From the NCBI GenBank assembly GCA_973895155.1, contig OZ316897.1, positions 10,563,832 through 10,627,831 on the forward strand: DNA of 64,000 nt, given 5' to 3'. Source of the stretch: Marsupella aquatica. Taxonomy: Eukaryota; Plantae; Marchantiophyta. Shown one piece after another: positions 29,224 through 51,676 of this stretch (the first letter of the stretch is position 1; each line of letters opens with the position of its first letter). The notes below the pieces were generated by a model. The model had not been told where the DNA came from and searched no databases. It worked only from the letters and a program-made list of their open reading frames with translations. The position numbers were made by a program, and so were the translations under genes.

Positions 29224-32200
29224 TCAGCTTATCTGTTTTCCTTTTCGTCGTCTGTCCAGTTCTGCTTCGGCCTCCAACACTAACTGTCGAAGCCGGTTCA
29301 CTTCTTGTTCACACTCCTGGAGAGTTTTCTTAGGTGGAACTACAACAGAGTCAGGGTCAGCTGGCTGGTAGGGTTTGATCAGGTTGACAGAGAACTCCTT
29401 CAAAGCATCTACTCCTCGCACCTGCATAGAGAAGAACACAATATGAACAAAACGCCTCAAAAGGATATCTCATGCAGTGGATATGCCCAGGACAGGTGAG
29501 AGCTGCAGTCTTCCTTTCCCTCTCTCGAGAAAGTCCACCAGTGATGTGAGGACCACCAATATATACAGAAAAAAGGAAATGCGAGTCATTAAGACGTGTA
29601 GAGAATGACGTAAGGGATCCTACAGTACCAACCTACATTAGCAAGCAGAGCCTTGGCTCAGATATCACCATCAAACTTATCAGATAAATACCTCCTCTGG
29701 AAGCAAAGGTAACTGAGTGATATGAAAGTCCTCATATAGTTCATGGAACTGATCTAAATATTTCTTCTGCATTCGTACTCTTGCTTGTAGTAATTTTGAG
29801 TCGGCAGCTGTTTCAAATTGGACACTTCCGTGAGTTAGAAGCTCCTCATGCAAAACGCGCCCATCCTATCGACGCTTGGCACGGCATAAAAGGCATTGGG
29901 CAACTACCAAATCAGACGAGTTCTTATCTGGTCCGATTAGTTTAATGAAACATTTGCGGAAGAAGAGGATTTTCATACATGATAATAGCAAACAGGGGTA
30001 TGTAAGGCGGATTTAACCATATTTACATCAGCTCAGTATGTCGGCGGATTAGGCAGAAAAGATCACAGAACGGCCCTGTTTTGATCGCTACTGTCTATTG
30101 CCAGAGATCGTCTGGGAAACTCACCTTCCTCCTTGAACAAAACTTGATTGATGACGATATTATGAGTGTCGATTTCAAAACGGGCCAGCTCCTGCACTAG
30201 TCTTTCTGTTTCATAGAGTGAAAGAAACTCCGGGATGCATACACAAACAAAAGTTGTCATATCCTGGACCACCCAATCCCGAAATAAGTATGACGACTAT
30301 AACAAGGTCGTTGCCGATAGCATAAATTGACTTGATTTGTTGCTTCTGGCTTCAAGAGTAGACTAACGACTAGAAGGACGTGTAAGAGGCTCTTACAGGA
30401 TTACGAAACTGCTCATTGACTTGCTCAATCACCAATTTCATGCCTTCCAATTTGCTCATAATGGCATCCTCTCCGAACTCATTGCCAGCTCCAAACATCC
30501 GTGTTACCTGGACCACCAGATTTCCTCTGTCGTTACTGCATCACCAAGTCCCATCGTATAAAAAGCACCTCCAAGGCTGAATGAAAGGCACCCATATCTA
30601 CATACCGTGTCCCTGCACTGACTACTTTATGTAACAACTTCACATACACATAGAGCTGACGACACCTTCTCAACAAGTAAGAAATAGACCCTCCTGCACA
30701 ACATATCTATCGCGATCTTTGCGATACTCTGAAGCGTCTCCAGCATGTGAAAGTTACCGTTACTCTTAGTCCAGGACCCTTTCCATGACTCTAGACCAAA
30801 CATAGACAAAACGTCTCCAAACGCCGAATGTACACTTGGTTCGTGTTGGAATAGCACATTGCATAAATTTATGCAGGATCGGTACTGTTTCACTAAACCT
30901 AACTATTACTTTCAGAAATACCGAATTAAGCTCAGCTTCTACATTACACACTCGGAAGCACTATCAAGCAGTTGAGGAGTTAATCTAGACCTGATTGATA
31001 AGCCCTCCAAACTTGTTCTTCAGAGTCATAATCTTGCCAAGCCCTTTCTCCAGAGTTGATGGGAACTGCAACAACCGTAATGTGTGGCCAGTGGGAGCTG
31101 TGTCAAACACTATGACATCATAGTCCAATGTCTGCACCAACCTGCATTTCGATCAGCTCTCAGTCATACACCAAACTCTACAAAGCCCATAGGTCTAGTA
31201 AGTATCAGTATTGCCCAGCTAAGTTCTACAAAATCGCAATACAATGATACGATACAACATCAAAAGAATCTGATTACATGACGTACATGAATCATTCTGG
31301 GAGAATTTATTGGACGTACGATGGCCTCATTATTCACCTAGACCTCCAACTATTACGTTCCGCTCTAATTATGACTTGCAGCAAAATTAACTTAGCAAGA
31401 ACAGGTTCCTGTTAATCCAACAGCATTCCATGGAGACATGTGCGGCATCTGAGTTCGCTTCAAAAGACTCTCTCAATTGAGGGGAAGACGAACCAATGGA
31501 TGATTTCGATTTGAAATCGGCTCTCCATGAAAAACTTTTTAAATTTGTCAATGACGGAGAGCTTCCACAGTCTGCTTATTATGAAAATGCACCGGTGTAG
31601 AGAATGCAAGGGAGAAAAGAATACAGACACGAAGAGCGGTACCAACGAAAACAAACAACCCGAGTTAGGTCAACTTAGCAAACATCACACCCTTCAGAAC
31701 CATCGCATGCGGGGCAACTAACGTGATGCAAGTTTCACACCGAACAGCCAAAGGATCGTTAGGGAGAAACTTACTTGAGCATTTCAGCAAAACTCATGGC
31801 CTCATCTATGCCCGGTATTGAATTCGCAAGCTCGGACACAAAACCTCCCATCCCTTCCAATGACTCCAACTCATCGCTCTCCACGTTGGGATCTACCTCC
31901 TGCATAATAACCACACCGTAACAAAAGTCATCCGTGTAAGTCCTAGATGCAGGACTCGTAGGCAATTGCGGTAGCACCTAAAAAGGTTCACAGTAATTCT
32001 AACAAGAACCACTCTAGCAAGAATTCCTGCGCGAGTTGAAGTCACCTGATCTTTCAGATTTAGATTAGGGAAAATACAGAAAAATCATGCGAAAGCTAGA
32101 TGCAGAAAGCATAGGGAATTGAAGTATAACCTAGAAATGAAACAACAATCAACGAAAATCACTCGACATCTATAGTCGCCATGGTAGAGACGGAGTAGCA

Positions 32201-32585
32201 CCTTGCTCTTCCAACCTAAGTATCGACTGAGCAGAAGACAGGCGAAGCAGAAGGATACATTGGAGAAGAGAACAGAAGGGAAAAGCACAAGGAGAAAAGG
32301 AGAGCGAACCATTGCAAAAAGGTTGGAGAAGCCCTGGACGAGAGTGGGAGTGCGCGTGAATTTCTGCCGAAACGCGTCGCTGAGGTTGTGAGCCGGATCC
32401 GTGGAGATGATGAGCACGGACGGGCGCACGGCCGCCAACTGCACGGCCAGCATGGAGCTGCACGTCGTCTTTCCGACACCTCCTTTGCCTCCCACGAAGA
32501 TCCATTTCAATTGCTGCTGCTCCAACACATTACTCAAGCTCGGCTGCAACGCGCCCGCGCCCTCCAGCTCCTCGTCTTCCGCCAT
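29224..32585 (-). CDS. GET3: GET3a / ASNA1 (ArsA-family) tail-anchored protein targeting ATPase, multi-exon
   Basis: [16 protein letters not shown]-loop, [76 protein letters not shown], and the plant C-terminal coiled coil; GT-AG junctions seen. Confidence 0.95.
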
Positions 32586-33559
32586 ATCTAGTAGCTCAAT
32601 TTCCTGCTCCAATAATCCCCTCCCTTTCTTCGTCCTCGACCTCCGTCTCCTCCTCCGCAATGAATGAAATGGAACGGAATCCTCTGTCAAAACAACCTCT
32701 ACATTTTAGATTTAACGAAGAGAAACAAGACCTTTCAGTCGAAACTCGAGCAGAGCACTTTTCTGCACCGATGGACTCAATTACCGGGCCTAATTACAAT
32801 ATATCTTAATCAACTAATCACCTACTGTAATGTTGTGAAAATCGCGGCCGGCCTCTGTAATCACTCCTAATTCGTGCTTCTAATTTGGGTTACCGGGTTC
32901 GGGTACTCTGGTTATCACGAGTGGGTTTATTACTGTTCCAATAAAGCTGACGCAGTACGGAATCAAAAGCTTTGCTATGATTCGCTGATTTTCAGTGGTA
33001 ATGTGGCATGTTGTTGTACGTGTCATGAGCCTTCACGAGGGGCTTTGGTCCAAGTGGCTTCGGTCAGTTGGCCAGCGATCAGGTTGGAACTGGATAGTTT
33101 GTAAGGTTTTTTTATGTGGTGAGGGTGGCCAAAGTCACCTTGTATGAAAGAGAAAAATGTTAGGAAGACCTAGCCCTAGATGTAAGGATAGGTGGCAGAA
33201 TCTGGCTCATGGTTATCTGTTTGAAATTGGCTAATGTTATCATGATATTAACTTTTTCAGGAGATTAGGTTACTTTGTCTTATTGAAATTTTATATATGT
33301 ATGTTTATTTCAACTTATTCTAGACAAGGTGCATTTTTGTGATTTTGAAATTATTTTACCCTCCCTTAATGTTTTTAATTATCATTTCTGAGACCCACCG
33401 TTTCTGAGACCCACTCTTTTGGGTCTATATATATTTTTCAGTCTTGTAAAATCATTATTTTTAACCAACAATAGAAACGATGACAACCTAGTAATTAATT
33501 GACAAAATTGTAACTGGCCAAATAAGAATTACATGACTCATCACGTTTCAGGTGATTCT

Positions 33560-34230: not shown

Positions 34231-34789
34231 TGTGGCCAGCTTGTAGCTCAAAATCGCTCTAAACTAGGTGTGCAGACTCCTCTCCCCTGCCTCCGCTAGG
34301 CTCTCTCTGGCACAACCTTGGGATACATAATGAAATTCAAATATAAACATCATTCAATCAATCATATATAGTGAACATCAGCAATGTATGACAGAAATGA
34401 ATCTTTACTGATCTTGGAAACCCTTGCATATATGCTGGGTTGAAGGCATGCATACAATTTAATTTGGTGGCACTAAATCCAGCACTAAAGCATCCACCAT
34501 AAAACTGATTATGCGTTATTTAACTTAATATTTAACTGGTGTCTCAACACTACTGCTAGCGTGTAGCTCAACATTGCTCTACACTGGTTCGCCAGCTTTC
34601 CCTGCCTCAGCTACGCTCTTTCTAGCACAAACCTTGCACAACATACGTAAGCATCTACCATCAGCTCAATTCCGACAACGAATATTTATTAAGTGTCCTC
34701 CCACTCCCGGTTTGACCTTGCCCGTCAAACTGGGCGTTTTTGAGTGGCAAATTGGCAACCCGGCACCCGGGTTCGGAAGCAGTCCGGGA

Positions 34790-35330
34790 AAGGAAACCTT
34801 CGGCCGCGGTTCGGGTTCGGGAGGCCGGGTTCGGGAGGAGGTGTGGAGGGTTTGGGTGGGGGTCCGGGTGACTAATCGGGTCCGGGTCCGGGGCGGAGGC
34901 GGTCGGTGGGGGCTTGGGGTGGGGGCTCGGGGTGGGGTCCGGGTGGGGTTCGGGTCCGCTCGGTGGGGGTTCGGGTTGGGGTCCGGGTGCGGCTCGGGTC
35001 CGTGAGGCCGAGTTCGGGAGGAGGTGCGGGGGGTTCGGGTGGGGTCCGGGTGGAGTTCGGGTTTGGGTCCCGGTCCGGGGGTTCGGGTTCGGGAGGTGCG
35101 GGGGGGTTCGGGTGGGGGTCCGGGTCCGGGGCGGAGGCGCTCGGTGGGGGTTCAGGTTGGGGTCCGGGTGGGGTTTGGGTCCGGGAGGCTGAGGTTCGGG
35201 GTGGGGTCCGGGTGGGGGTCCGGTTCGGGGTTCGGGTCCGGGTCCGGGGGGCACTTCGGGGGTTCGGAGGTTCGGGGTTCGGGATGGGAGGCTTGGATTA
35301 GGGTTTTGCGGTTTAGGGTTGGAGGGTGAG
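34790..35330 (+). repeat. G-rich subterminal array (GGGTTC/GGGTCC hexamer variants), left arm of the hAT element
   Basis: Dozens of GGGTTCG/GGGTCCG units, ending in TTAGGG/TTTAGGG motifs near 35300-35320. Confidence 0.9.
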
Positions 35331-36226
35331 GCCGGCCGGGAAAGGGTCGGGAGGGTGCTTGGGAGAGGATAAAAGGAGGAGATCCCTCCTCCCCCTCCTC
35401 CCCCTCCTCATTTTTGCAGAAGAGGAGGAGAGGAGGAGGAGGAGAGGAGGAGGAGGAGGAGGAGAGAAGGAGAGGAGGAGAGGAGGAGGAGGAGAGAAGG
35501 AGAGAAGGAGAGGAGGAGAGGAGGAGGAGGAGATAAGTGTTTGGTTTTGGTTTTTGTTTTTGATTTTTGGTTTGTTTTTGTTTGTTTGTGTTTTGTTTTG
35601 TGGTTTTTGAAGTTTTCTTTTGTGTTTTAAACCCTAACCTTAGAGCCAAATGGAGGGATATAAAGAAACACTTGTACGCGCACGCTTTGAGCCTCGGTTC
35701 GGTTTGCGATACTCTGTACAAGAATTTCTTAATATCACCTTAACAATTTAGTCTCCTTTGTTCATTAAGTAAAACATTTGCGGAGATAGAGGAATCCATG
35801 TACGCATGCTTAGAGTTTTGGCTCGGTCTGCGATACTTTGCATGGATACCACGATTCGCCAAGAATGTTTTTACTTGAATTACAAATGAGTGCTAAATTA
35901 TAGACACCAAATCACATATGTTGAAGCAAGAATATAACAACTTTGAAAGAAAAGAACACTTTTGTGCGCATGCTTTGAGCGTCCGCTCGGTCTGTGATAT
36001 TTCACAACTATTGTCTTTCTCTTTTATTGTTGTTATATTTAAAGGTAATTAAAATCATGTGTGCAATAAAAATACATAATGCATGGGATAAAAAAACCGG
36101 GAAGAGATAATAACAATACGACTTGTAATTTTCAGGCTGGTCGTTGAAACCTTATTGGAAGGATTTTATTTAAATCCCGGTAAGATTTTGTTCCTCCCTC
36201 ACATATTCCTTTTGTGAAGGGAAAAC

Positions 36227-37091
36227 ATGGCCATCGGTAATTTTAGTTTAGAGTATAGGCAAGTGTTGGAGACAATCACAAAACATGTGAATGAGGGATA
36301 TGAGCCGAATCTTGTTGCTCTGGATGCATTGAAGAATGCTCGAAACACTCTCGAACATGCTAGGAATTCTAGCAAAGTGGTCGGGAAACAAAAATGGAAG
36401 GGGGCAAACAAAGAGGCAAAATAGGTTTGACATAATGTGGTAGTGTCGATATGGAAAGAAATACTTTATTGCTACACTCAACCGAAACAGTATGGGGTGG
36501 ACGGGTTCGAGAGGGAGTTCACAAGACACGAACAGAAAGAATACAAGAATTTTCTTGGTGAGATAACCTGTTGTATGCGGGAAAGCGTACAGAAGAAGGA
36601 CAATTTCACACGAGAGCAAATGAAGTCATTTGAAGATGAAACTGAGAAACCGGGAGGATTTCTGGAAAATTTGGCTCTCAACTTGGAGAAGCATATTTGG
36701 GATAATTTGGCAGCCAAAGTGGAGGAGGGTGACACTACATTGCTTGGAAACCGAGGAACGCGAGTATGAGCAACGAGGATTGTTGAAGCAAATGTCATCA
36801 ATGGAGACTCAACAAAACACTGAAGAAATGACTGAAGATACTATACCGGCGATGCAAATAGATGAAACTCCCATTGAACATTTCACAATCAATGAATATA
36901 ATTTGTCAGCTGGGGAATTTGACAGGTTGTTATTCAGTGGCCGACTCGATGAGTGGAAACAATATGCGGCAGCCAACCAACCATCAATAGATGAGCAAAA
37001 TTTGCAACGATCCATTCGGCGTCATCGACAATGTCAACAACAGGCAGAGGTGAAAATAGAAGCCGTCGACAACAACAACAAAAGGAACTGA
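36227..37091 (+). pseudogene. Accessory (cargo) ORF of the hAT element, unknown function, disrupted by stops and a frameshift
   Basis: 36227-36424 and 36437-36769 are in the same frame, separated by two stops, and continue after a frameshift into 36630-37091. Charged, helical, protein-like composition, ~285 aa in total. Confidence 0.6.
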
Positions 37092-37842
37092 AACCAATAG
37101 TCTCTACATTTTGATGTTATTTTCATGCACTTACTATTAGAGACCTTTTGTTAAATTAGAAGCGGCATATCCTCTTTGACAATTATTTTCAACTTGTAAT
37201 TGGTAAAGAGATTTTGGAGTGACATTACATTGCATATCCCGTTGAGTACATATATTTTTCATTGGGGGCATGGCGTCCCCTTTTGGAGAATGTGTATTTT
37301 CGTAAGAATACTCCATCCTCCAATCAGCCATAGGTTTTGGAAGCATATTTTCGGGCTCACAATCATATTTTTGGACACACAAAATGGCACCGTAACAAAA
37401 TTGGGATTCTAATGATTGAAAGAGTGGGAATGTTGTTTTGTACAGACGTTTACAGGTATGTTAGCGCCTTAGGTTATGTACACCGGTCACGGGCATAATT
37501 ACAAAGTAAACTCACAAAAATTTGCCTACATGAGAAGGGTTGTGAAAGTAACAGAGCTTTGAGACCAATTTGATGGTCGTAATGTGGACTCCAACAATTT
37601 GTCAATTTTTGCAATTGGTGACAAGTATGGGGAAAATAGACGTGATGAGAGACGGTAGCACAGTGGACTCAGGTACTGATCCTTCTCTGAAATCATTTCC
37701 AAAAGGAGATCATGTACCACAATGAGTTCAACAAAGTCAACATCGCAATGGTTTTAGCCGCCCAAGTTGAGAATGATTTTGTAGAAGGATGTATACCTAA
37801 GTCCACTCACTTTTCTTGTCTTTCATAATTTTTTCCGCTATT

Positions 37843-38645
37843 GCTGCTATGGCCAATGACATTCATGCACATGCGAACCGAGGCCAACGCCTACTCCTTT
37901 GCCCACCGCAAAAATGGGCCCTCATTACAACTTGAAGTTGAACGGAGTTTATTTGAGTACAAGAGAAGTTCTGAAAGCAAATGCACTCTCAGGTCAAATT
38001 TTCAGGTCCTTCGAGCAGAAAATTACTGAGTATGTCATCGATCCGTTGGTTTTACAACTTCTCTCATACTCAAATAAACTCTGTTCAACTTCAAGTAGCG
38101 CAGCTGCTACGGCCAATGACATTCATGCGCATGCAAACCGAGGCCAACGCTTACTCCTTTGCCCACCCCAAAAATGGGCACTCATTACAACTTGAAGTTG
38201 AACAGAGTTTATTTCATTATGAGAAGGTTTATGGAAGCAATGGCACTCTCAAGTCAAATTTTCAGTTCATTCGACCAGAAAATTACTGAGTATGTCGTCG
38301 ATCCAATGCTTTCACAAATTGTCTCATAGTCAAATAAACTCTGCTCAACTTCAAGTAGCGCAGCTGCTACGGCCAATGACATTCATTTGCATGGGAACCG
38401 AGGCCAACGCCTCTACATTTGCCTACCCCCAAAATGGGCCCTGATTTCAACTTGAAGTTGAATAGAGTTTTTTTTCATTATGAGAAGGTTTATTCAAGCA
38501 ACGGCACTCTCAGGTCAAATTTTCAGGTCCTCCCGACTTTATTATTATTGAATATGTCGGTGCTCCGTTGCGCGAATAAATCTTTTGATAGTGAAATGAA
38601 CTGACCAATTACTGGAGTACGGCTGCTACGGCCTATGGCATTAAT
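37843..38645. repeat. 260-bp tandem array (3 units plus a partial) inside the hAT; related copies at ~39895-40370
   Basis: GCTGCTA(T/C)GGCCAATGACATTCAT starts at 37843, 38103, 38363 and (partial) 38622. Confidence 0.9.
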
Positions 38646-38661
38646 TTGCACAATTTCATGT

Positions 38662-38926
38662 TTATATCCTCTCCTTTCCGAATTCCAATTCGAGCTTGGA
38701 CATCCTCTCGTCAGCTGGTCTCCCCCATTTCAGCTGCTCTTCACGTGAACCGAGATGGCAGCCTCTGGAATCCTCAAACCTATTTCATTTCAATGCATCA
38801 TTCATAGTGTTTGAGGAATCCAAAGGCGTTGCCTTTGGTTCGCGTGAAGAGCAGCTGAAAGGGTAGAGACCAGCTGACGAGAGGATGTCCAAGCTCGAAT
38901 TGGAATTCAAAAAGGAGAGGATATAA
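38662..38926. other. Long near-perfect hairpin (~120-bp arms, ~20-nt loop); candidate hpRNA or pre-miRNA
   Basis: TTATATCCTCTCCTTT..GAATTCCAATTCGAGCTTGGACATCCTCTCGTCAGCTGGTCTC..TTTCAGCTGCTCTTCACG is mirrored at ~38804-38926. Confidence 0.9.
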
Positions 38927-40724
38927 TTGGGTGAACTTGACAAGCTTCTCGACCAATACTGACAGTGTATGATTGCATTCCATGGATAATTACATGATCA
39001 TGTAGTGTAGTCCCTAAACTTGCAATTGGTGACAAGTGTGGGGAAAATAGATGTCATGAGAGTCAATAGCACTGTGGACTCAGGTACTGATCCTTCTCTG
39101 AAATCATTTTTGAAAGTGATTATTCGCAATGGTTTCGACAATAAGTTGAGAATGATTTTGTAGAAGGATGGGTACCTAAGTCCGATGTGTTCCCGTCTTT
39201 CATCATAATTTCCGCTATTGCTGTCTGTACATAGTCAGCATATTGTGGGTCTATAATCCTCATACCTATTAATAATCATTCGAATAGTCAAATGGTTGTA
39301 CTCTACGAAAGGAAGTACTTGTCTGTGTTATTCAATCTTGGGGCTCTGTTGCTTTCACATATATTTTCATAGTGACAAAGTTAGATGTTTTTAGCGACTT
39401 GAAATTGGTGACTCTATTTTGCGTCTGCATATCAATTCGGTGACCGATCTTGCGGAATTCCTCTGACCCTGTCTGATCATCATCATGACATTGCTCTCCT
39501 TGGCCACCAATTGCTCGTACAATGAATTAATGTCATAGTAGCCGTACTCCATTAATTGGTTTCACGACCAGGTACTGAAAACAATTGCTAACATTTTTTC
39601 CAATTCTACTCACGCCTAGTTTATACCGTATAGACTACAGCGTACCATGGATAAGTGTACCATGGAGAAGTGCAGACGAAGTGAGAAAGGCTGTTCCTGC
39701 CTTGAGTATATCCATGTCTGAAAAAGAACAAACCTAAGGAAATATTTAATTAAGTTTTTTGGGAGCATTGCGTAAGATATAAACGGGTGAGCTTGAGAAG
39801 TTTCTCGACCATTAGTGAGTGTGTAACTGCAGGGTGATCATGTAGTCCCTCGGTAATATGGAAAATTCATTTGTAACACCATGTTGCACAGGACTTGCCA
39901 ACTCCTTCACCCATCCCCAAAATGGGCCCTCATTACAACTTCAAGTTGAACGGGGTTTATTTGATTATGAGAAGGTCTTTCAAAGTACCTGCATTCTCAG
40001 TTCAAATTTTCTGGTCATCCCGACCAGAAAATTACTGATTATGTGGCCGATGTGTTCATTTCACAACTTCTCTCGTACTCAAATAAACTCTGCCCAACTT
40101 CAAGTAGTGCAGCTGCTACAGTCAACGACATTCACCCACCCCAAAAATGGGCCCTCATTACAACTTGAAGTTCAACTAAGTTTATTTTATTATGATAAGG
40201 TTTATTCAAGCAATGACATTCTCAGGTCCAATAATCAGGTCCTCTCGACCTAATTATTATTGAATATGACGTTGCTCTATTGTTGGACTAAATCTTCGCA
40301 TAGTGAAATGAACTGACCAATTAATGGAGGGGGGTTGGTAGGGACTACGGCTGCTATGGCCAACGACAAGGTATCCCTAAACTTATTGTGTCTCTATGAC
40401 ATTCTCAAATGCAAATAGAAATAAATTATTCAATCATTGTACAATAATAAAAGGTACAACACACTGCAAGACAATACAATCATGTTACAAAAAATATAAT
40501 TGTTTATAATTTTGTCTATGTCAGTTACGACAATATAAGAGTAGCAACACTTGATATTATCCTAATGGAAAGATGCTTCAAGGCTGTGAAGAGAAATTTT
40601 GTGCATTGTTGTCACGATTGTTGCGCAAAAGCGCATTCCACTCGTCTTGTTTGTTGCCCCAACTGAGTGGATCACGATTGTGTGACTGAACATTGTGCGA
40701 CGTTTCTTGAAATGATGATATTCC

Positions 40725-43700
40725 TCAAAACCCACCAAGGCGAATAGGCCTGTTCGACGTATATGGATTCATGACACTTGGCCCTGCATATGCATTCAAG
40801 GGTGGACCTGCATGATGTTGCCAGTTTGCATGTGGGACGTTTGAAGTTTGACCTTCATGATTGTTGTATCCATGAAAAAAGGTTGTTGTCCTTCCATCCG
40901 TCGGATGCCCTGCTGTGCCTATGCGTTGCTCGTCGAAATATGGTCTGCTTGTGTCCACATCATTTGCGAAGTTCGACCAAGGTGACCTTGGTTGGGAAGG
41001 CATCACAAAGTCTGTGTCCAATGATGCATCTTCGTCGTCTTGGATTTGCGATTCATCAATTGTAGGATACATCTCCAAATCCATTTCATTCTCCCATTCC
41101 CCTGCATCAGTGATGTCTGTATCTGGTGGAATACGAGTCAAGAACTCACTATCCTTATCTAGTGAAAATCCATGTAGCAATTCATCAGCATCATCAATTG
41201 TATCATAATCTTCAACATCTTCTTCACCAAGAGCCGCACGTGTTGCATTGTACTCTTCATTGCCGCACAACTCCATGGAGACAGGGCTAGGTCTCGGGGG
41301 GTTGACTATCAAAAATCTTAGGAACCACGTGCGATCCAAAATAGGTATTTTTCATAGAAATTAGCTAAATTTTAAAAAGCGTAGGAAGCAAAAGAAGGTA
41401 TTATAGACCAATATTTATAGAATATTCTTTAATATATACCTTTTATAAAGTAAAATAGGTCATTAAAATTGAAAGTAGAGAATGTTTTTGGAATATTCCC
41501 ATTATAAAATAGGTGTGTTTATATTAGGCTAGGATCGCACGTGGTACCCCAAAATATACACTAAGTTAACCCCCTGAGGGCTAGGTCCATCATTTGTTCT
41601 TCTTCTTTGGTCACAACGTTCATATATAAACGTATGCGGGTTTCAAATATTTGTTAGCCCTTTCTCTACCCTCATGTTTGTAAATACAAACACCAAATCT
41701 TTTGCTCAATCATTTGTCAATCGATATTGGAATGTATAAATCCATACGAACTCCAGTTTCGCTCGCAAGCTAATGCGCACACTTTTTGGTGTAAGATTCT
41801 TCGCGCCAGGATTCTCAAATATTTATAATCTGCACCATATGCATGCCACCACTCTACTGGACTGACGTTACCTATACTTGATTGGGCGGCTCCCATCGCT
41901 ACTGATGTATTGGGAATTTTGTTTTGGGCGTCAATGGCTTGACTGTGGATGGTAGAAATAAGTTCTTTGACGTCGCAATCGTGGTTGATCCCCTCCTTTA
42001 CCTGTTGTTCTGAATATCTAGCAATGTATTCACTGAAACCCCTATAGAGTTCTGGATCTCCAGCAACATCTATGTCCTCATCAAAAAACATTTGGGAATT
42101 GAGATATGTTGTCGCTAGCATAAAATCAGTGGTAAGAGTTTTTTTTAATCCAAATACATTTTTAGTATCTTTGGTTTCAATACCTCTGTTACCAATGGAC
42201 AATCCTCCATGCTTGCTTTCAAAACATCAATCCCTCTTTTCAAACTCCAATACAACCAACCTGATTGCGGAGAATCACCATCAAATTCTCGCAACATCCT
42301 CACCAATGGAGTAAAGAATTTAACTGTATCCTTCACTTCAACCCAAAATGTATCTTGTTGTATCCAAATTTTAAGTTCGTCTGCCTTTCCCCTCGTCATA
42401 TGTCCAGCTGATTTTGGTCGCAATGGAAGTCTATCACGATAAGACTGCCAATTATCATCAATGGCCATCTGTTGTAAAGCTCCTCTTAGCTCCAACGCTC
42501 TTTGTGCAATTAGGAAATTGGTCGCAAATCTAGTTGCATTTGGATTCAACAGTTTTTTGTCAAGAGATTTTCTTGCAAATATTGCAGAAAGCTTTTGCAA
42601 TGATGAAACTGCTTTTACTATCCACCTCAAGCGCTTAAAAATCTTTTGGAATGGATTCTGTCCAGCATCATCTAGCACTACACGCTTGTGACCACACATA
42701 TCCTCTAGCAGCAAATTAAACACGTGGGCAGCACACCAGCTCCAAGTGACATGAGGATACTTTTTTATGACTACCTCATAACATGCTACGCGATTTGCGG
42801 GTGCTCCATCAGTTACGATTTGAATAATATGATCTGCACCAATATCCTCAATGTATTTCAACCACATCTTGCCAAGATATTTCCCATCTTTCTTGTCAGC
42901 TTGCGCAGCATTCCAACTATCCAAGAAGAAGTCACCTTTAGAAGTCAACAACATGACATTCATCAAAGGTTCTCTTCGGACATTTTCCCATCCATCCAAA
43001 GAAAGAGAATACCCATAAGGTTTTGCCTCCTTTAAAGTTTGCGTCATGTCCTTTGTGAGATCCTCCTTACTGTCTTCCAATAATTTCAATCGCAAACTTC
43101 GCATCGTAGGTAGAGAGTAACCATTGACAATCCCTTTTGAAGTCTCTTTGACTGCTTCTCAAAAAAAGGGATTATTTAAAACATTGAATGGAATACCACT
43201 GGTGTAGAAAGCTTTTGCCCAAAGCTTATCCAAATTTGTTCTATTTGGAATTTGATAGATATCCATAATTGGGTTAGGAAGATTTACTGGCCTATCTCCT
43301 TCCCTGACATGTGTATCATCCATGTCAACATAGTTTGACCCTCGTGTGGATGCTTGCGAATATGAACTTCCAACACTTGGCCTACGGCCTCTCACATCCC
43401 GCAAGATATGAGTTCCATCCCTTTGTTTGTACTTTAAGGTTAGTGGAACCTTTATCACATTGTACATTATGTTGATGGCATCCAAATCGACGACACCATA
43501 GAGTTGCATGCAAGGGGGCGCATCCCCTTTTTGGATGTTTCCCATCAAATGCGCCTTTGCTCGTGTTGCATGATGAGTAACATATGTTAAACAATACTTG
43601 CATCTTTGATAGATACGATTGACATCATGACATGTTGAAGGCGCATCACATCGTTCAAAATATCTCCACATTGGAGATTGTTTTGAAGGGTGTTCTTGCA

Positions 43701-43785
43701 CACGAGTTGGACCAGGCCTGGGAGTAGTGGAATGATATCGAGTTTCATGCAAATCCTCTTCATCGGACATTGTTACGACTCTCAA
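40725..43785 (-). pseudogene. hAT transposase (BED finger, DUF659/RNase-H-like DDE core, dimerisation domain, acidic tail), inactivated
   Basis: SPMWRYF..CKYC..RAKAHL; LSLDGW, IVTDGA, CAAH, ATRFAT; PVEWW..G..L..LA.RIL..ACERNWS; DLVFVFTNMR. Frameshifts at ~43160, ~42145 and ~41715, one stop, and a nested MITE. Confidence 0.93.
41294..41577. mobile_element. MITE nested in the transposase coding sequence
   Basis: TIR TCGGGGGGTTGACT / AGTTAACCCCCTGA; 10-bp TSD GGGCTAGGTC (41284-41293, 41578-41587). Removing it restores the frame ...QRRRTNDGPSPVSMELC. Confidence 0.88.
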
Positions 43786-44334
43786 TGGTAAAAAAAATAA
43801 AAGGGTTGATTCTTTTGATTTTGTGGATATAACAAATATAGTACAATGGGTTACTTTGCTGAATTATCGCAGACTGGGCCTAAGCTCAAAGCATGCGCAG
43901 GAAAGTTTCCCAAATTCTTATATTTGTCAGCATCCCTACTTCAACCTATGTTATGTAATATCTATAACTTCACAATCGTTTATATTTCAAGTGAACATAT
44001 GTATGAGAAATCGTGATACCCATATGAAATATCATAGACCGAGCCAAAGCTCTAAGCATATGCACATGGGTATCTCTTTACTTGCAAGTAGTTCACTTTC
44101 AAACAAAACAATGATGCAAAGTTGTTAAGGCGATATAAGGAACTTCTCGTACGAATTATCGCAGACCAAGCCGAGCTCAAAGCATGCTCGTACAAGAGTT
44201 CCAATGTATCCCTCCGATTTCTCCCTAATGCTAAACCACAAGAGAGAGAAACACAATGAGATTTTGGATTAGTGAAAAGGATTAGTGACTCCTACTTATA
44301 CTAAACTATCTACTTCCTACCTCCTAAAGCTCTT

Positions 44335-44850
44335 AATCTTCTAACCCTAATCACGCCTCCCCTAACCCTAATCTCGCCCCCTAACCCTAATCCTGCCCCT
44401 AACTCTTCCTCGGCCGCCAATTCCCGAGCCCCGTCCCCGAACCCTGCACCCCGTTCCCCAAACCCCCTACCCGAACCCCCTTCCCCGAACCCCCTACCCC
44501 GTTCCCCGTTCCCCGCATCCCCGAACCCCTTCAACCCGTACCCCCTTCCCCGAACCCCGCCCCCCCCTTCCCCAAATCCCACCCCCGGCCTCCCCTTCCC
44601 CGCCCCCCGTCCCGCTTCCCCGAATCCCGTCCCCCGGGCCCCCTTACCCCGACCGGCCCCTTTTCCCCGGCTACCGGGAAGGGTCCGGGCAGGGTCCGGG
44701 GAGGGTTCGGGGGGGAGGGTCCAGGGAGCGGGGGCTAGGGTCCGGGAAGGGCCCGGGAGTCCGGGTTCGGGTCAGGGGGAGTTCGGGTTCGGGTCCGGTG
44801 TGTTTGGGAGGAGTTCGCGAAAGGTCCGGGGAAGTCGGGGTTCATTCGGG
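44335..44850. repeat. Right-arm subterminal array: CCCTAA telomere-like units, then a C-rich CCCGAA tract, then a G-rich GGGTTC/GGGTCC tract
   Basis: CTAACCCTAA x3 at 44341-44400; CCCCGAACCC repeats to ~44670; strand switch to G-rich 44680-44850. Confidence 0.9.
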
Positions 44851-47499
44851 AGAATCTTCATGAATATCCGTCAAATTGAGTATTTTCGGGCCATCATTTG
44901 ACGATTTGATGTGCCCGGCAAGGCGTCAAGGTGCCCGTCAAGTTAAACCGGGCTCCCACTGGTGACAGGTAGAAAATGTACTCCTTACCCATCAGTGCTA
45001 TACTCTCATATGTATAGGTTGTGGTGAGATGATGATGAAAATGAGAAACACCAGCTCTGCAAATTCCGTCCCTGGGCACATGTGAGGTCCAGCACCAAAT
45101 GGCAAGAACGTGTATGGCCTAGGGGCGGCGTCGAATCGGTCTGCGTTTACTTAAGACTTTCAGGAGCAGAATGAGACTCAGGATTTGCATGAATGAAATT
45201 GTGCAGCGGGATCACTAACCAACCCTTCGGTATTAGGTGACCTTCATACTCTACATCACGACTAGCCTGCCTTGCGACAACAGGAGCGATTGAAAGAATT
45301 CTCTGTAATTCTTGAAACAACTTTTTAGTATAGATTATTTTGGACGTGTCTTCCCATGACAGTCTGGTTCTCTCTTTCGACTGATCGATGTTTCTAAGAA
45401 TTTTCTGCTGCTCAGCCTGAACACAATCACGATAGACGTCTGGATTCTCGTTCAGATACTTGAGGGCCCATGTAAGAAAAGTGGAGGTACTGTCAATAGC
45501 AGCAAAAAACAGTAAACAATATTATCAGCTATTGTATCGTCATCTAGAATGATGGGTCTCTTCTCCTCGCGCTTGAATACTCTCTTGAGAAGCTAGAAGA
45601 ACTCCCAACATATTGGCTGCCTGAGTACCCTGTTGAGCCCTTCTCCTTATTATGAGTTCCTTGATGTATTGCGACAAAGCCGCCTTTGCCTTCGTGCCTT
45701 TGTTAAAAGTTGTCCCGTGAAGATTCAATGGAAATGAACCCAAAGCCTTGTTCAAACGCTTGAAGTTTTCTTGCGCAGTCCTTCCTTGAGTGGAGCTCCA
45801 TTTATGAAGAGAATAGTGTCGTTGAGGACAAATTTCGCGAACCCCGAAGTCGCTCCCAGTGTCGCAGGCTTGAGACAAGAGTTGAAAACGTTTCCATACC
45901 TGTCGACGTGTGAAAAGCGTTAATGCAGGATTAGTGGCAAAAGCAATTGATTCTCCTATAATAGGCCAACCGAACGACGCTTGGGGAAGTTGAGCACCAG
46001 GCTTCGATGATGCAGACCAGCTCGGACTCCAATGTTGGAACAAAAGCAGAAGTACTGCACCCAAGACTGAGGGCAGAGCTATTGACCAAGCTAACACTGG
46101 ATCCATCAATCACGTACGTCGGTACAGTAATATATCTACAGGACAACCCAGTCGAGACTGACACAATAGTTCGATCCCAGCACACACGCAAAATATGCTT
46201 ACGGAGAAGGGTCAGTCCGTGTGAAGCCTGCCAAGTGCCAACGGAGGTGAACAAAGTAGCCCCGACAGTAGCTCCAAGCGAAGTCTTCGAAGACCTGTAC
46301 TAGGCTCTAAGAGAGCACTCGTGTCAGCAGCAGTAGCTAGCGCGTGAGCATGAGAGAATTCTTGAGAGCCAGTATTAATAGTGATACCCCTTTTTGTTTT
46401 CAAAACGCTTCGTCCACGACAAGATTTAAAAGTAATCATGATCTCTCGCCTTTCTGTTTCCAAATTAAGCTGCGTCCAGCACAAGATTGGACAGTTGGTG
46501 GGCCAAGGCAACGACGATGGTGACTCAATTAAACACGTGCATACCGAGGTCAATGTATGACGGGCCAACCACAAAGTGAAGTTGAATTCTAATAAGTCAC
46601 CACCAGTTCTTCGTATGACTACTTAGAATCGTTCTGAACACAGGTAGAAGAGCAGAAATTCAATGAGAATATTCGAGTATATAAGTGCAGTGAAATAGAG
46701 TGCCTCACAGAAGACAGACTCTGCCAAGAATGATCACCCCGACCACGCTAGGATTTAGTGTCCCTAAATGCTCCGTAGAGCATGAAGACGATCCCGAGAA
46801 GTCGAGTTCAAATGGGTAACTTCGAAGAGTCGACACTGTGAAATTTCACTGAGGATAACTTCAGGCGTGTACAGCTTTGTCTATACACCGGTAGATCTAA
46901 ATTTTGTCAATATAGACCCATGTCCCAAGTTTTCGTGTGTTTCAAATCATGATGTCTCATGAATATAAAATCCACTGAGCATAACGTCAAAAGCGTACAT
47001 GCGTTGCATACACCGATACATCCGACTCCTTTCAATATAGACACTTCAAATCGAATCACCTGAATATAGTACGTTTGGGATAAGTTTTTAGTTTATATAC
47101 AATAAAGTCCTTTTTACATGTTTTCAGGGCATTGTGGGCACAATGCCCCATTGGAAACAGGGTTGAAACCGCGACTGTTCCCGAGTCTTAGTGAACAGCA
47201 GCAATTAAAGCAAAAAAATTAATTTAATTTTTACTGCTCTGGAAATCCCTTGTAGGATCCCTTGATTTATACTCGGATGAAGGCATGCAATTGGTGGCAC
47301 TAAACTATCCAGCATAAAACTGACTATCAGTAATTCAGTATGTAACTACTGTAGTGTCTTAACCGCACAGCTACAGTAGCATGTAGCTTAAATTTGTACA
47401 TAGCTCTAAACTGGGTGTAAAGACTCCCCTGCCTCTGCTACAGTCCTCCCCACATGAAGCCATGGTGCTGTATTTGAATAGTGGGCCATGGAGCACTGT

Positions 47500-50224: not shown

Positions 50225-51676
50225 TCAATTCCGACGACGAATATTGATTGGGTATCCTCCTACTGGTGACGGGTAGAAAATGTACTCCTTACCCATATCC
50301 AGTGCTATACTCTCATATGTATAGGTTGTGGTAAAATGATGAATAAAAACGAGAAACAGCAGCTTTGCAAATTCTGTCCCTGGGCACATGTGAGGTCCAG
50401 CACCAAATGGCAAGAACGTGTATGGTCTAGGCGTGGTGTCGAATCGGTCTGGGTTAAAACTTTCAGGATCAGAATGAAACTCAGGATTTGCATGAAAGAA
50501 ATTGTGCAGCGGGATCACTAACCAACCCTTCGGTATTAGGTGACCTTCGTACTCTACATCACGAGTGGACTGCCTTGCCACAACAGGAGCGATTGAAAGA
50601 ATTCTCTGTAATTCTTGAAACAACTTTTTAGCGTAGATCATTTTGGACGTGTCTTCCCAAGACAGTCTGGTTCTCTCTTTCGACTGATCGATGTTTCTAA
50701 GAATTTCCTGCTGCTCAGCCTGAACACAATGATAGACGTCTGGATTCTCGTACAGATACTTGAGGGCCCATGTAAGAGTAGTGGAGGTATTGTCAATAGC
50801 AGCAAAAAACAGTAAAACAATATTATCAGCTATTGTATCGTCATTTAGATGGGTCTCGTCTCCTAGCGCTTGAATACTCTCTTGAGAAGCTAGAAAAACT
50901 CCCAACATATCGGCTGCCTGAGTATCGTGTTGAGCCCTTCTCCTTAGTATGAGTTCCTTGATGTATCGCGACAAAGCTGCCTTTGCCTTCGTGCCTTTGT
51001 TAAAAGTTGTCCCGGGAAGATTCAATGGAAATGAACCCAAAGCCTTGTTCAAATGCTTGAAGTTTTCTTGAAAAGTCCTTCCTTCCGGAGTGCTACTGAC
51101 TTTCTCCATTCCGAGTAAAAACCACATGCTTACATCCAACGTCATCTTTTTGGTCGCGTCTCTCGTGTTAACGGTCCCTCGTTCAGCCCAGGACGTCAGA
51201 TTCTCAAGAACAATGGCCTCGAGGACATCAACTTTCGTACGCAGAGCCTCTGGAAGAAGCGCTTTCTGGATGAGCCTCTTGAGTGACACATGCCGAGGAC
51301 CATCTTGAAACAAGACTGATTTCGGACCGAGAACTTGCCGTGAACTTGGTGGAGCTCCATTTATGAAGAGTTCAGTGTCGTTGAGGACAAATTTCGCGAA
51401 CTCCGGAGTCGCTCCCAGTATCGCAGGCTTGAAAGATAGACAAGACTTGAAAACGTTTCCATGTCTGTCGACGTGTGAAGAAGCGTATAATGCAGGATTA
51501 GTGGCAAAAGCAATTGACTCTCCTATAATCGGCCAACCGAACGAACCTTGGGGAAGCTGAGCACCAGACTTGAATGATGCAGACCAGCTCGGACTCCAAT
51601 GTTGGAGCAAAAGCAGAAGAATTGCACCCAAGACCAATGCCAGAGCTATTGACAACGCGAACACTGGATCCATCAT
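50225..51676 (-). CDS. Cytochrome P450, CYP85 clan (CYP707A-like), intronless, 483 aa
   Basis: N-terminal TM anchor, LPQGSFGWPIIGES, I-helix FFAAIDNTS, ELQR (ExxR), FNPDRF and heme motif [11 protein letters not shown]. Confidence 0.95.
   Translation of the reverse strand: MMDPVFALSIALALVLGAILLLLLQHWSPSWSASFKSGAQLPQGSFGWPIIGESIAFATNPALYASSHVDRHGNVFKSCLSFKPAILGATPEFAKFVLNDTELFINGAPPSSRQVLGPKSVLFQDGPRHVSLKRLIQKALLPEALRTKVDVLEAIVLENLTSWAERGTVNTRDATKKMTLDVSMWFLLGMEKVSSTPEGRTFQENFKHLNKALGSFPLNLPGTTFNKGTKAKAALSRYIKELILRRRAQHDTQAADMLGVFLASQESIQALGDETHLNDDTIADNIVLLFFAAIDNTSTTLTWALKYLYENPDVYHCVQAEQQEILRNIDQSKERTRLSWEDTSKMIYAKKLFQELQRILSIAPVVARQSTRDVEYEGHLIPKGWLVIPLHNFFHANPEFHSDPESFNPDRFDTTPRPYTFLPFGAGPHMCPGTEFAKLLFLVFIHHFTTTYTYESIALDMGKEYIFYPSPVGGYPINIRRRN

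Follow-up and report, generated by a model that had tools for sequence, protein, structure and literature searches.

Results

An inactive 10.2-kb hAT element in Marsupella aquatica

The 64-kb stretch of the Marsupella aquatica genome analysed here (contig OZ316897.1, positions 10,563,832 to 10,627,831; hereafter the window, numbered from its first letter) contains an old, inactive copy of a large DNA transposon of the hAT superfamily, residing in the genome of a leafy liverwort. The copy comprises a broken transposase gene on the minus strand, the remnant of a second gene facing it on the plus strand, a mirrored module of three stem-loops at the head of each of these units, and long foldback repeats in between. 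An earlier interpretation made from the letters of the window (the sequence-only reading) had described a dead two-gene hAT element with exact boundaries, a layout like that of MuDR or VANDAL elements and a preserved architecture. The boundaries of the element, set by an 8-bp target site duplication (TSD) and matching termini, were confirmed; the CCCGGTTT termini agree at 8 of 8 positions between the two ends, and the extended terminal inverted repeats (TIRs) at 10 of 11.

34706-44952: whole hAT element, 10.2 kb
34698-34705: TSD, left copy, CTCCCACT, identical to the right copy (8/8)
44953-44960: TSD, right copy, CTCCCACT
34706-34716, plus strand: left TIR, CCCGGTTTGAC
44942-44952, minus strand: right TIR, reading GTTAAACCGGG on the plus strand

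About 1.3 kb of subterminal DNA is mirrored between the two ends of the element, and no second copy of any of its parts was found elsewhere in the 64-kb window.

The transposase pseudogene

40584-43770, minus strand: hAT transposase pseudogene, about 1,000 codons, no intron seen
41294-41576, minus strand: nested miniature inverted-repeat transposable element (MITE), 283 bp

The minus-strand gene that enters from the right end is a transposase, as the sequence-only reading had proposed. Its translation matched the Pfam families DUF659 (PF04937, E=2.6e-29, 102 bits for a cut-off of 34.7) and hAT dimerisation (PF05699, E=3.7e-6, 27.1 bits for a cut-off of 21.4), the former described as an RNase H-like core typical of transposases of the hAT superfamily and occurring chiefly in Viridiplantae (PMC3985635). 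The motifs LSLDGW, VTDGAPAN and CERNWS, in which the catalytic D, D and E reside, are still legible, and the protein ends in a long acidic tail. At the N-terminus lies a CCHH zinc-finger-like CxxC...H...H pattern (RCKYC..THHATRAKAH), with no Pfam BED match and only a weak match to zf-U1. The locus carries the 8-bp TSD, the short TIRs, the RNase H-like core and the dimerisation domain of a hAT element, a recognisable BED finger being the exception.

The nearest proteins are unnamed products of another leafy liverwort, Calypogeia fissa, of which P0002 corresponds to the N-terminal half and P0004 to the C-terminal half (best local identities of 82% and 81%, respectively). Alignment of C. fissa proteins with the window by tblastn was colinear over 43767-40584, with 71-79% identity across long stretches, and P0027 together with P0029 implies a transposase of about 935 residues. 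Members of the two 90% clusters of the closest C. fissa transposase proteins are located on five different large contigs and the family therefore appears to be multi-copy in that species. The C. fissa annotation splits each transposase copy into two to three adjacent models (P0002/P0004 are CAM6112531/33 and P0027/P0029 are CAM6097278/79). In a search of sequencing runs, no DNA run contained more than a fraction of 0.34 of the words of the transposase and none from RNA was a match, and a scan of metagenome contigs with the transposase alignment gave no match.

That the copy is dead, also part of the sequence-only reading, was borne out by at least six disruptions of the transposase: its reading frame is interrupted by a stop at 43159-43161, by two more within 41577-41723 and by an early one at 40725, it shifts near 42140 and again near 41725, and the nested MITE is inserted in it. 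Because these stops, frameshifts and the insertion break the gene, the copy is considered old as well as dead, and nothing at the locus is functional today. The MITE is flanked by an 11-bp TSD (GACCTAGCCCT, at 41577-41587 and 41283-41293 in minus-strand reading) and bounded by imperfect TIRs of about 45 nt (CAGGGGGTTAAC... and TCGGGGGGTTGAC...); the length of its TSD suggests a non-autonomous element of the Mutator type, and no other copy was found in the window.

Mirrored stem-loop triplets head both transcription units

35640-36015, plus strand: left module, upstream of the second open reading frame (ORF2), with three stem-loops of about 55 nt at 35663-35735, 35787-35859 and 35951-36015
43841-44228, minus strand: right module, mirror of the left, with three stem-loops at 44133-44204, 44006-44078 and 43841-43913

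The new finding at this locus is a triplet of stem-loops, mirrored between the two ends, that heads each transcription unit and whose pairing is conserved. The two triplets belong to a 365-bp module inverted between the ends (35640-36004 against 44228-43860, 71.5% identity), the right copy of which lies upstream of the transposase ATG at 43770. Each triplet repeats a unit of about 55 nt with the conserved core GCATGCTTWGAGC..GGTCTGCGATA. In the alignment of all six copies, a 9-bp outer stem and a 4-bp inner stem were paired in 95.9% of cells, a value that fell to 25-45% in a control with slid partners. Changes on both sides of a pair (compensatory changes) occurred in eight of the nine pairs of the outer stem, and none of the shuffles attained the observed covariation score. 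Pairing is kept through compensatory changes, with the conserved letters residing in the loop and not in the stem, where the letters vary among the three repeats and the pairing is retained. The two outer copies on either side fold into the same extended hairpin (-18.7 to -20.1 kcal/mol) and the innermost copy is degenerate on both sides. When the six copies were used to build a covariance model, it detected no further copy in positions 1-35456 and 35526-64000 of the window.

On the sense strand of both genes the stems contain seven G-U pairs versus one A-C pair, and this imbalance hints at a structure formed at the RNA level in the leaders of both units. The triplets could instead be palindromic DNA sites for the transposase or for a host factor, being neither RNA elements nor promoters of two genes. 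They do sit within the inverted subterminal regions, palindromes pair equally well in DNA, and hAT transposases bind short subterminal repeats, as is established for Ac. On the other hand, the stem sequences differ across the three repeats and nevertheless remain paired, and G-U pairs exceed A-C pairs, a pattern expected of RNA and not of a duplex DNA site; the loop, moreover, is what is conserved. We consider this explanation rather unlikely and tentatively favor leader-RNA elements.

The plus-strand unit contains the tail of a RING-H2-like gene

36227-36719, plus strand: upstream open frame, with stops at 36422 and 36428
36720-37091, plus strand: 3' remnant of a coiled-coil/RING-H2 gene, comprising the C-terminal tail domain and the stop codon, no RING finger

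Behind the left stem-loop module, plus-strand open frames (ORF2) extend over 36227-37091, with a stop at 36422 and a change of frame near 36720-36766. Only 36720-37088, about 120 codons, has relatives, and the segment 36227-36719 as it stands is probably non-coding. A phmmer search of 1.84 billion representatives with the 153-residue C-terminal piece returned nine matches (P0015, E=1.2e-27, and eight others), all of them unnamed and none from an annotated plant proteome. The informative relatives, namely P0015 (624 amino acids, aa), P0019 and P0020, to which a follow-up search added P0030 (354 aa), share a layout in which a coiled coil is followed by a RING-H2 finger (CxWC...GTCGHxWHHAC...CxCR) and a conserved tail (TPIEHFTINE.NLSDGEF..L...GR..EWK), the finger lying directly upstream of the tail homologous to the piece in the window. 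In tblastn, P0030 matched this tail with 67% identity over 121 aa (E=3e-53), the match ending at most 2 residues from the C-terminus of P0030, and the stop codon in the window stands at the expected place. The AlphaFold model of P0030 had a mean predicted local distance difference test score (pLDDT) of 58.7, with only the helical tail reaching about 80. No Pfam family matched any piece of ORF2, and the RING alignment found no match in a scan of metagenome contigs.

The homology sets in abruptly at about 36720, within the last residues of the RING, so that the Cys and His residues of the finger are lost, as are about 100 residues relative to P0015. Upstream of this point, 36227-36700 belonged to no Atlas cluster and its recognition value was 1325, compared with the level of 2300 reached by 91 of 100 proteins of known families. 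Judged by these matches, ORF2 is not one gene and is best described as the 3' third of a RING-ligase-like gene fused to DNA for which no relative was detected, a truncation that would most simply be explained by an internal deletion. The sequence-only reading was right that a second, plus-strand gene once sat at the left, of which the approximately 120 codons without the RING finger survive; its claim that the architecture is preserved was overstated, given the missing finger and an upstream frame that has no relative.

Two origins of this remnant were weighed. The tail may derive from a host gene, a piece of which was captured (transduplicated) by this copy or its close lineage in the manner of Pack-type elements, the family being otherwise a one-gene hAT. 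Only a fragment is present, its homology begins abruptly and lacks the RING finger, and the C. fissa annotation contains the transposase, yet no RING-tail protein among its proteins of 343-1092 aa; gene capture by hAT elements is, moreover, reportedly documented in fungi. Against capture, the fragment retains its 3' end and stop codon and follows, in the sense direction, a mirrored version of the upstream module of the transposase; its relatives are also very scarce and without exception unnamed, which does not resemble a conserved host gene. Capture is in our view improbable. The rarity and anonymity of the relatives are what would be expected of a transposon gene rather than a host gene, and, together with the intact 3' end in sense orientation behind the mirrored module, they indirectly favor an accessory gene at the level of the whole family, a reading that we hold to be somewhat more likely than not.

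Foldback arrays and a long hairpin separate the two units

37609-37846: leader L1, paralogous to 39020-39223
37843-38640: array R1, three 260-bp units, units 1 and 2 being foldbacks of about 170 nt and unit 3 a variant end unit
38662-38926: near-perfect hairpin, 265 nt
38920-39019: spacer X1
39020-39223: leader L2
within 38920-39850: unique 630-bp stretch
39776-39850: second X copy
39851-40368: array R2, two units paralogous to R1, with the same variant end unit

The region 37609-40368 consists of two paralogous modules, each with a leader of about 230 bp and an array of 260-bp units. The first array was called as a tandem repeat over 37843-38529 (period 260 bp, 2.6 copies, 87% matches, score 1039). 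Both the 260-bp array and the long hairpin that the sequence-only reading had placed between the genes were found again, together with the second, paralogous array at 39851-40368. The 265-nt hairpin (arms of 90 nt, 93% complementary; -205 kcal/mol and z = -23.7 for the hairpin) has TATCCTCTCC... termini with TA on both flanks, and it is possibly a nested, TA-flanked foldback resembling a MITE; the TA flanks could also be a simple extension of the palindrome. In an Rfam search beginning at 35600, the hairpin was tried as a member of MIR7533 and rejected, since it scored 97.2 bits for a gathering score of 230 and matched on both strands. Both are long, near-perfect hairpins of about 250 nt with similar terminal letters (AUCCUCUCC), but with a score far below gathering and matches on both strands this is a generic resemblance between long or MITE-like hairpins and not membership.

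Local duplication gave rise to the arrays at least in part. For the 260-bp arrays no boundary with a flanking TSD was detected, and apart from the TA-flanked hairpin the automatic scan of the interior for TIRs with TSDs, an insensitive one that missed known cases, yielded nothing but weak candidates. The sequence-only reading itself had raised, as a challenge, the possibility that the interior is made of nested insertions with TSDs of their own; the one such insertion that was found lies in the transposase, outside this region. Much of 37.6-40.4 kb may still be secondary DNA, that is, nested MITE or foldback insertions and local duplications accrued after the death of the element. The MITE with its 11-bp TSD proves that insertions into this copy took place, the TIR-like TATCCTCTCC termini and TA flanks of the hairpin and the likeness of its ends to MIR7533 point the same way, the leader and array modules are duplicated with rearrangements, and the foldback units bear no sign of selection for pairing. 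On the other side, the arrays lack a detected TSD-flanked boundary, none of the interior modules recurs elsewhere in the window, and palindrome extension explains the TA flanks equally well. We hold a secondary origin of much of the interior to be a real possibility, if the less likely one.

Subterminal repeats and flanking genes

34806-35305, plus strand: left subterminal G-rich array of GGTTCGGG / GGTCCGGG-type repeats
35296-35322, plus strand: two telomere-repeat or telobox-like TAGGGTT cores
35384-35628, plus strand: simple repeats, CCT/GAG-type followed by TTTTG-type, at the left end only
44341-44403, plus strand: three 19-21-bp repeats, each with the telobox-like core CTAACCCTAATC
44407-44660: right subterminal array, C-rich CCCGAACC-type repeats
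44674-44830: right subterminal array, G-rich repeats

Each end of the element follows the same general plan. A short TIR leads into GGTTCGGG-type repeats that span about 500 bp, and after these come telobox-like motifs, the stem-loop triplet and the inward-facing unit. The motif G[GT]T[TC]CGGG occurs 26 times within 34806-35305, and 35 of its 38 plus-strand copies in the whole window fall in the two ends of the element. These repeats are probable binding sites of the transposase. The telobox-like cores are also mirrored, with two TAGGGTT copies on the left and three AACCCTA copies on the right. They lie inward of the GC-rich arrays and outward of the stem-loop modules, and could be promoter elements of both units.

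On the left, 2 kb from the element, an ORF on the minus strand (32088-32690) encodes the N-terminus of an ATPase of the ArsA/GET3 type (PF02374, E=3.5e-27) and is probably an exon of a host gene. On the right, at a distance of 5 kb, an uninterrupted cytochrome P450 ORF of 483 aa occupies 50228-51676 on the minus strand (PF00067, E=4e-63). With these ordinary host genes on its flanks, the transposon is located in gene-rich DNA.

Discussion

A decayed hAT element with a proposed RING-type accessory unit

We propose, with a probability of roughly 0.6, that the locus is best explained as a decayed hAT element which carried a RING-type accessory unit opposite its transposase and was internally deleted. 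Several observations count against this proposal. The transposase, the RING tail, the stem-loops and the arrays are known together from this single copy. The segment 36227-36700 did not resemble the RING family in tblastn or hhalign and had no protein match in the length band searched (62-196 aa), longer kin falling outside that band. No kinase or other Pfam domain was detected in the ORFs of at least 60 aa on either strand of 36.0-40.4 kb, and the RING and tail region was unmatched among the C. fissa proteins of the size range given above. The stem-loop covariation comes from a small sample, to which each of the two ends contributes three paralogue classes. Finally, compensatory change was seen in only 3 of the 72 predicted pairs of the foldback units, and for this reason they are read as decaying palindromes and not as selected RNA structures.

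The element inserted by cut-and-paste of the hAT type, leaving the 8-bp duplication, and its transposase would bind the GGTTCGGG-type repeats. An internal deletion or rearrangement would later have removed the rest of the left-hand gene or genes, RING finger included. Where relatives are intact, their RING protein may act as an accessory factor encoded by the element and working via ubiquitination, with a host silencing or repair factor, or the transposase itself, as its possible target. The stem-loops would be leader-RNA elements common to both units, and the DNA between the convergent genes would represent locally duplicated foldback repeats and a long hairpin, the latter maybe a foreign MITE. 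Read-through of the foldbacks and the hairpin would yield hairpin RNA, which might attract or tune silencing. Extended to the lineage, the proposal becomes more tentative: hAT elements of leafy liverworts might be two-unit machines in which stem-loop triplets head a transposase unit and an E3-ligase-like unit (RING-H2, possibly kinase), with foldback arrays between them and an accessory product that counters silencing or controls turnover of the transposase.

Comparison with known transposons

The convergent layout on which the sequence-only reading based its comparison with MuDR and VANDAL stands, but nothing ties the second gene to mudrB or VANC, its only detected kin being the RING-H2 tails, and no VANC-like gene was found. 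As in MuDR (mudrA/mudrB) and VANDAL (VANA/VANC), two convergent units are each headed by a shared region derived from the terminal repeats, and an accessory protein accompanies the transposase; MURA and MURB have been described to interact (PMC12973397). The differences are in the TSD and the transposase, with 9-11 bp and a Mutator-like element (MULE) transposase in Mutator as opposed to 8 bp and hAT domains only in the present element, and in the accessory remnant, which is RING-H2-related rather than MURB- or VANC-like and is not intact.

With the plant hAT elements of the DUF659 type (Ac/Tam3/Tag1-like, in the wide sense) the element has in common the 8-bp TSD, the short TIRs and the short subterminal repeats, as well as a transposase that combines a DUF659 RNase H-like core and a hAT dimerisation domain. 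Unlike these 3-5-kb elements, it is 10.2 kb long, has about 1.3 kb of structured, mirrored ends, the remnant of a second, convergent gene and 2.8 kb of foldback arrays, and its transposase, of about 935-1,000 aa, ends in a long acidic tail. Fungal hAT elements with cargo (ToxhAT and a housekeeping-gene amplifier) are likewise enlarged by genes other than the transposase; their cargo, however, consists of captured host or virulence genes, in contrast to the extra gene here, which seems to belong to a rare, transposon-type family and has its own mirrored upstream module. In the literature searched, no hAT element carrying a RING or kinase gene was reported from liverworts or from any other plant, in keeping with the undescribed lineage that the sequence-only reading had suggested.

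Implications for the hAT superfamily and for bryophytes

The hATs are textbook one-gene transposons. If the proposal is true, they can, like Mutator, CACTA and Harbinger elements, evolve accessory functions, and the family represented here would be a hAT counterpart of MuDR and VANDAL that is absent from the literature searched. The copy itself, dead and with most of its accessory gene lost, adds little functional material, and its nested MITE is a sign of its age; it is the family, more than the copy, that is of interest. Two handles are available for finding intact relatives, namely the conserved tail domain of the RING protein, which can serve as a probe, and the stem-loop motif supported by covariation, which marks both transcription units. 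Such relatives would, if the proposal holds, be candidates for interference, encoded by a transposon, with protein turnover or silencing in their bryophyte hosts.

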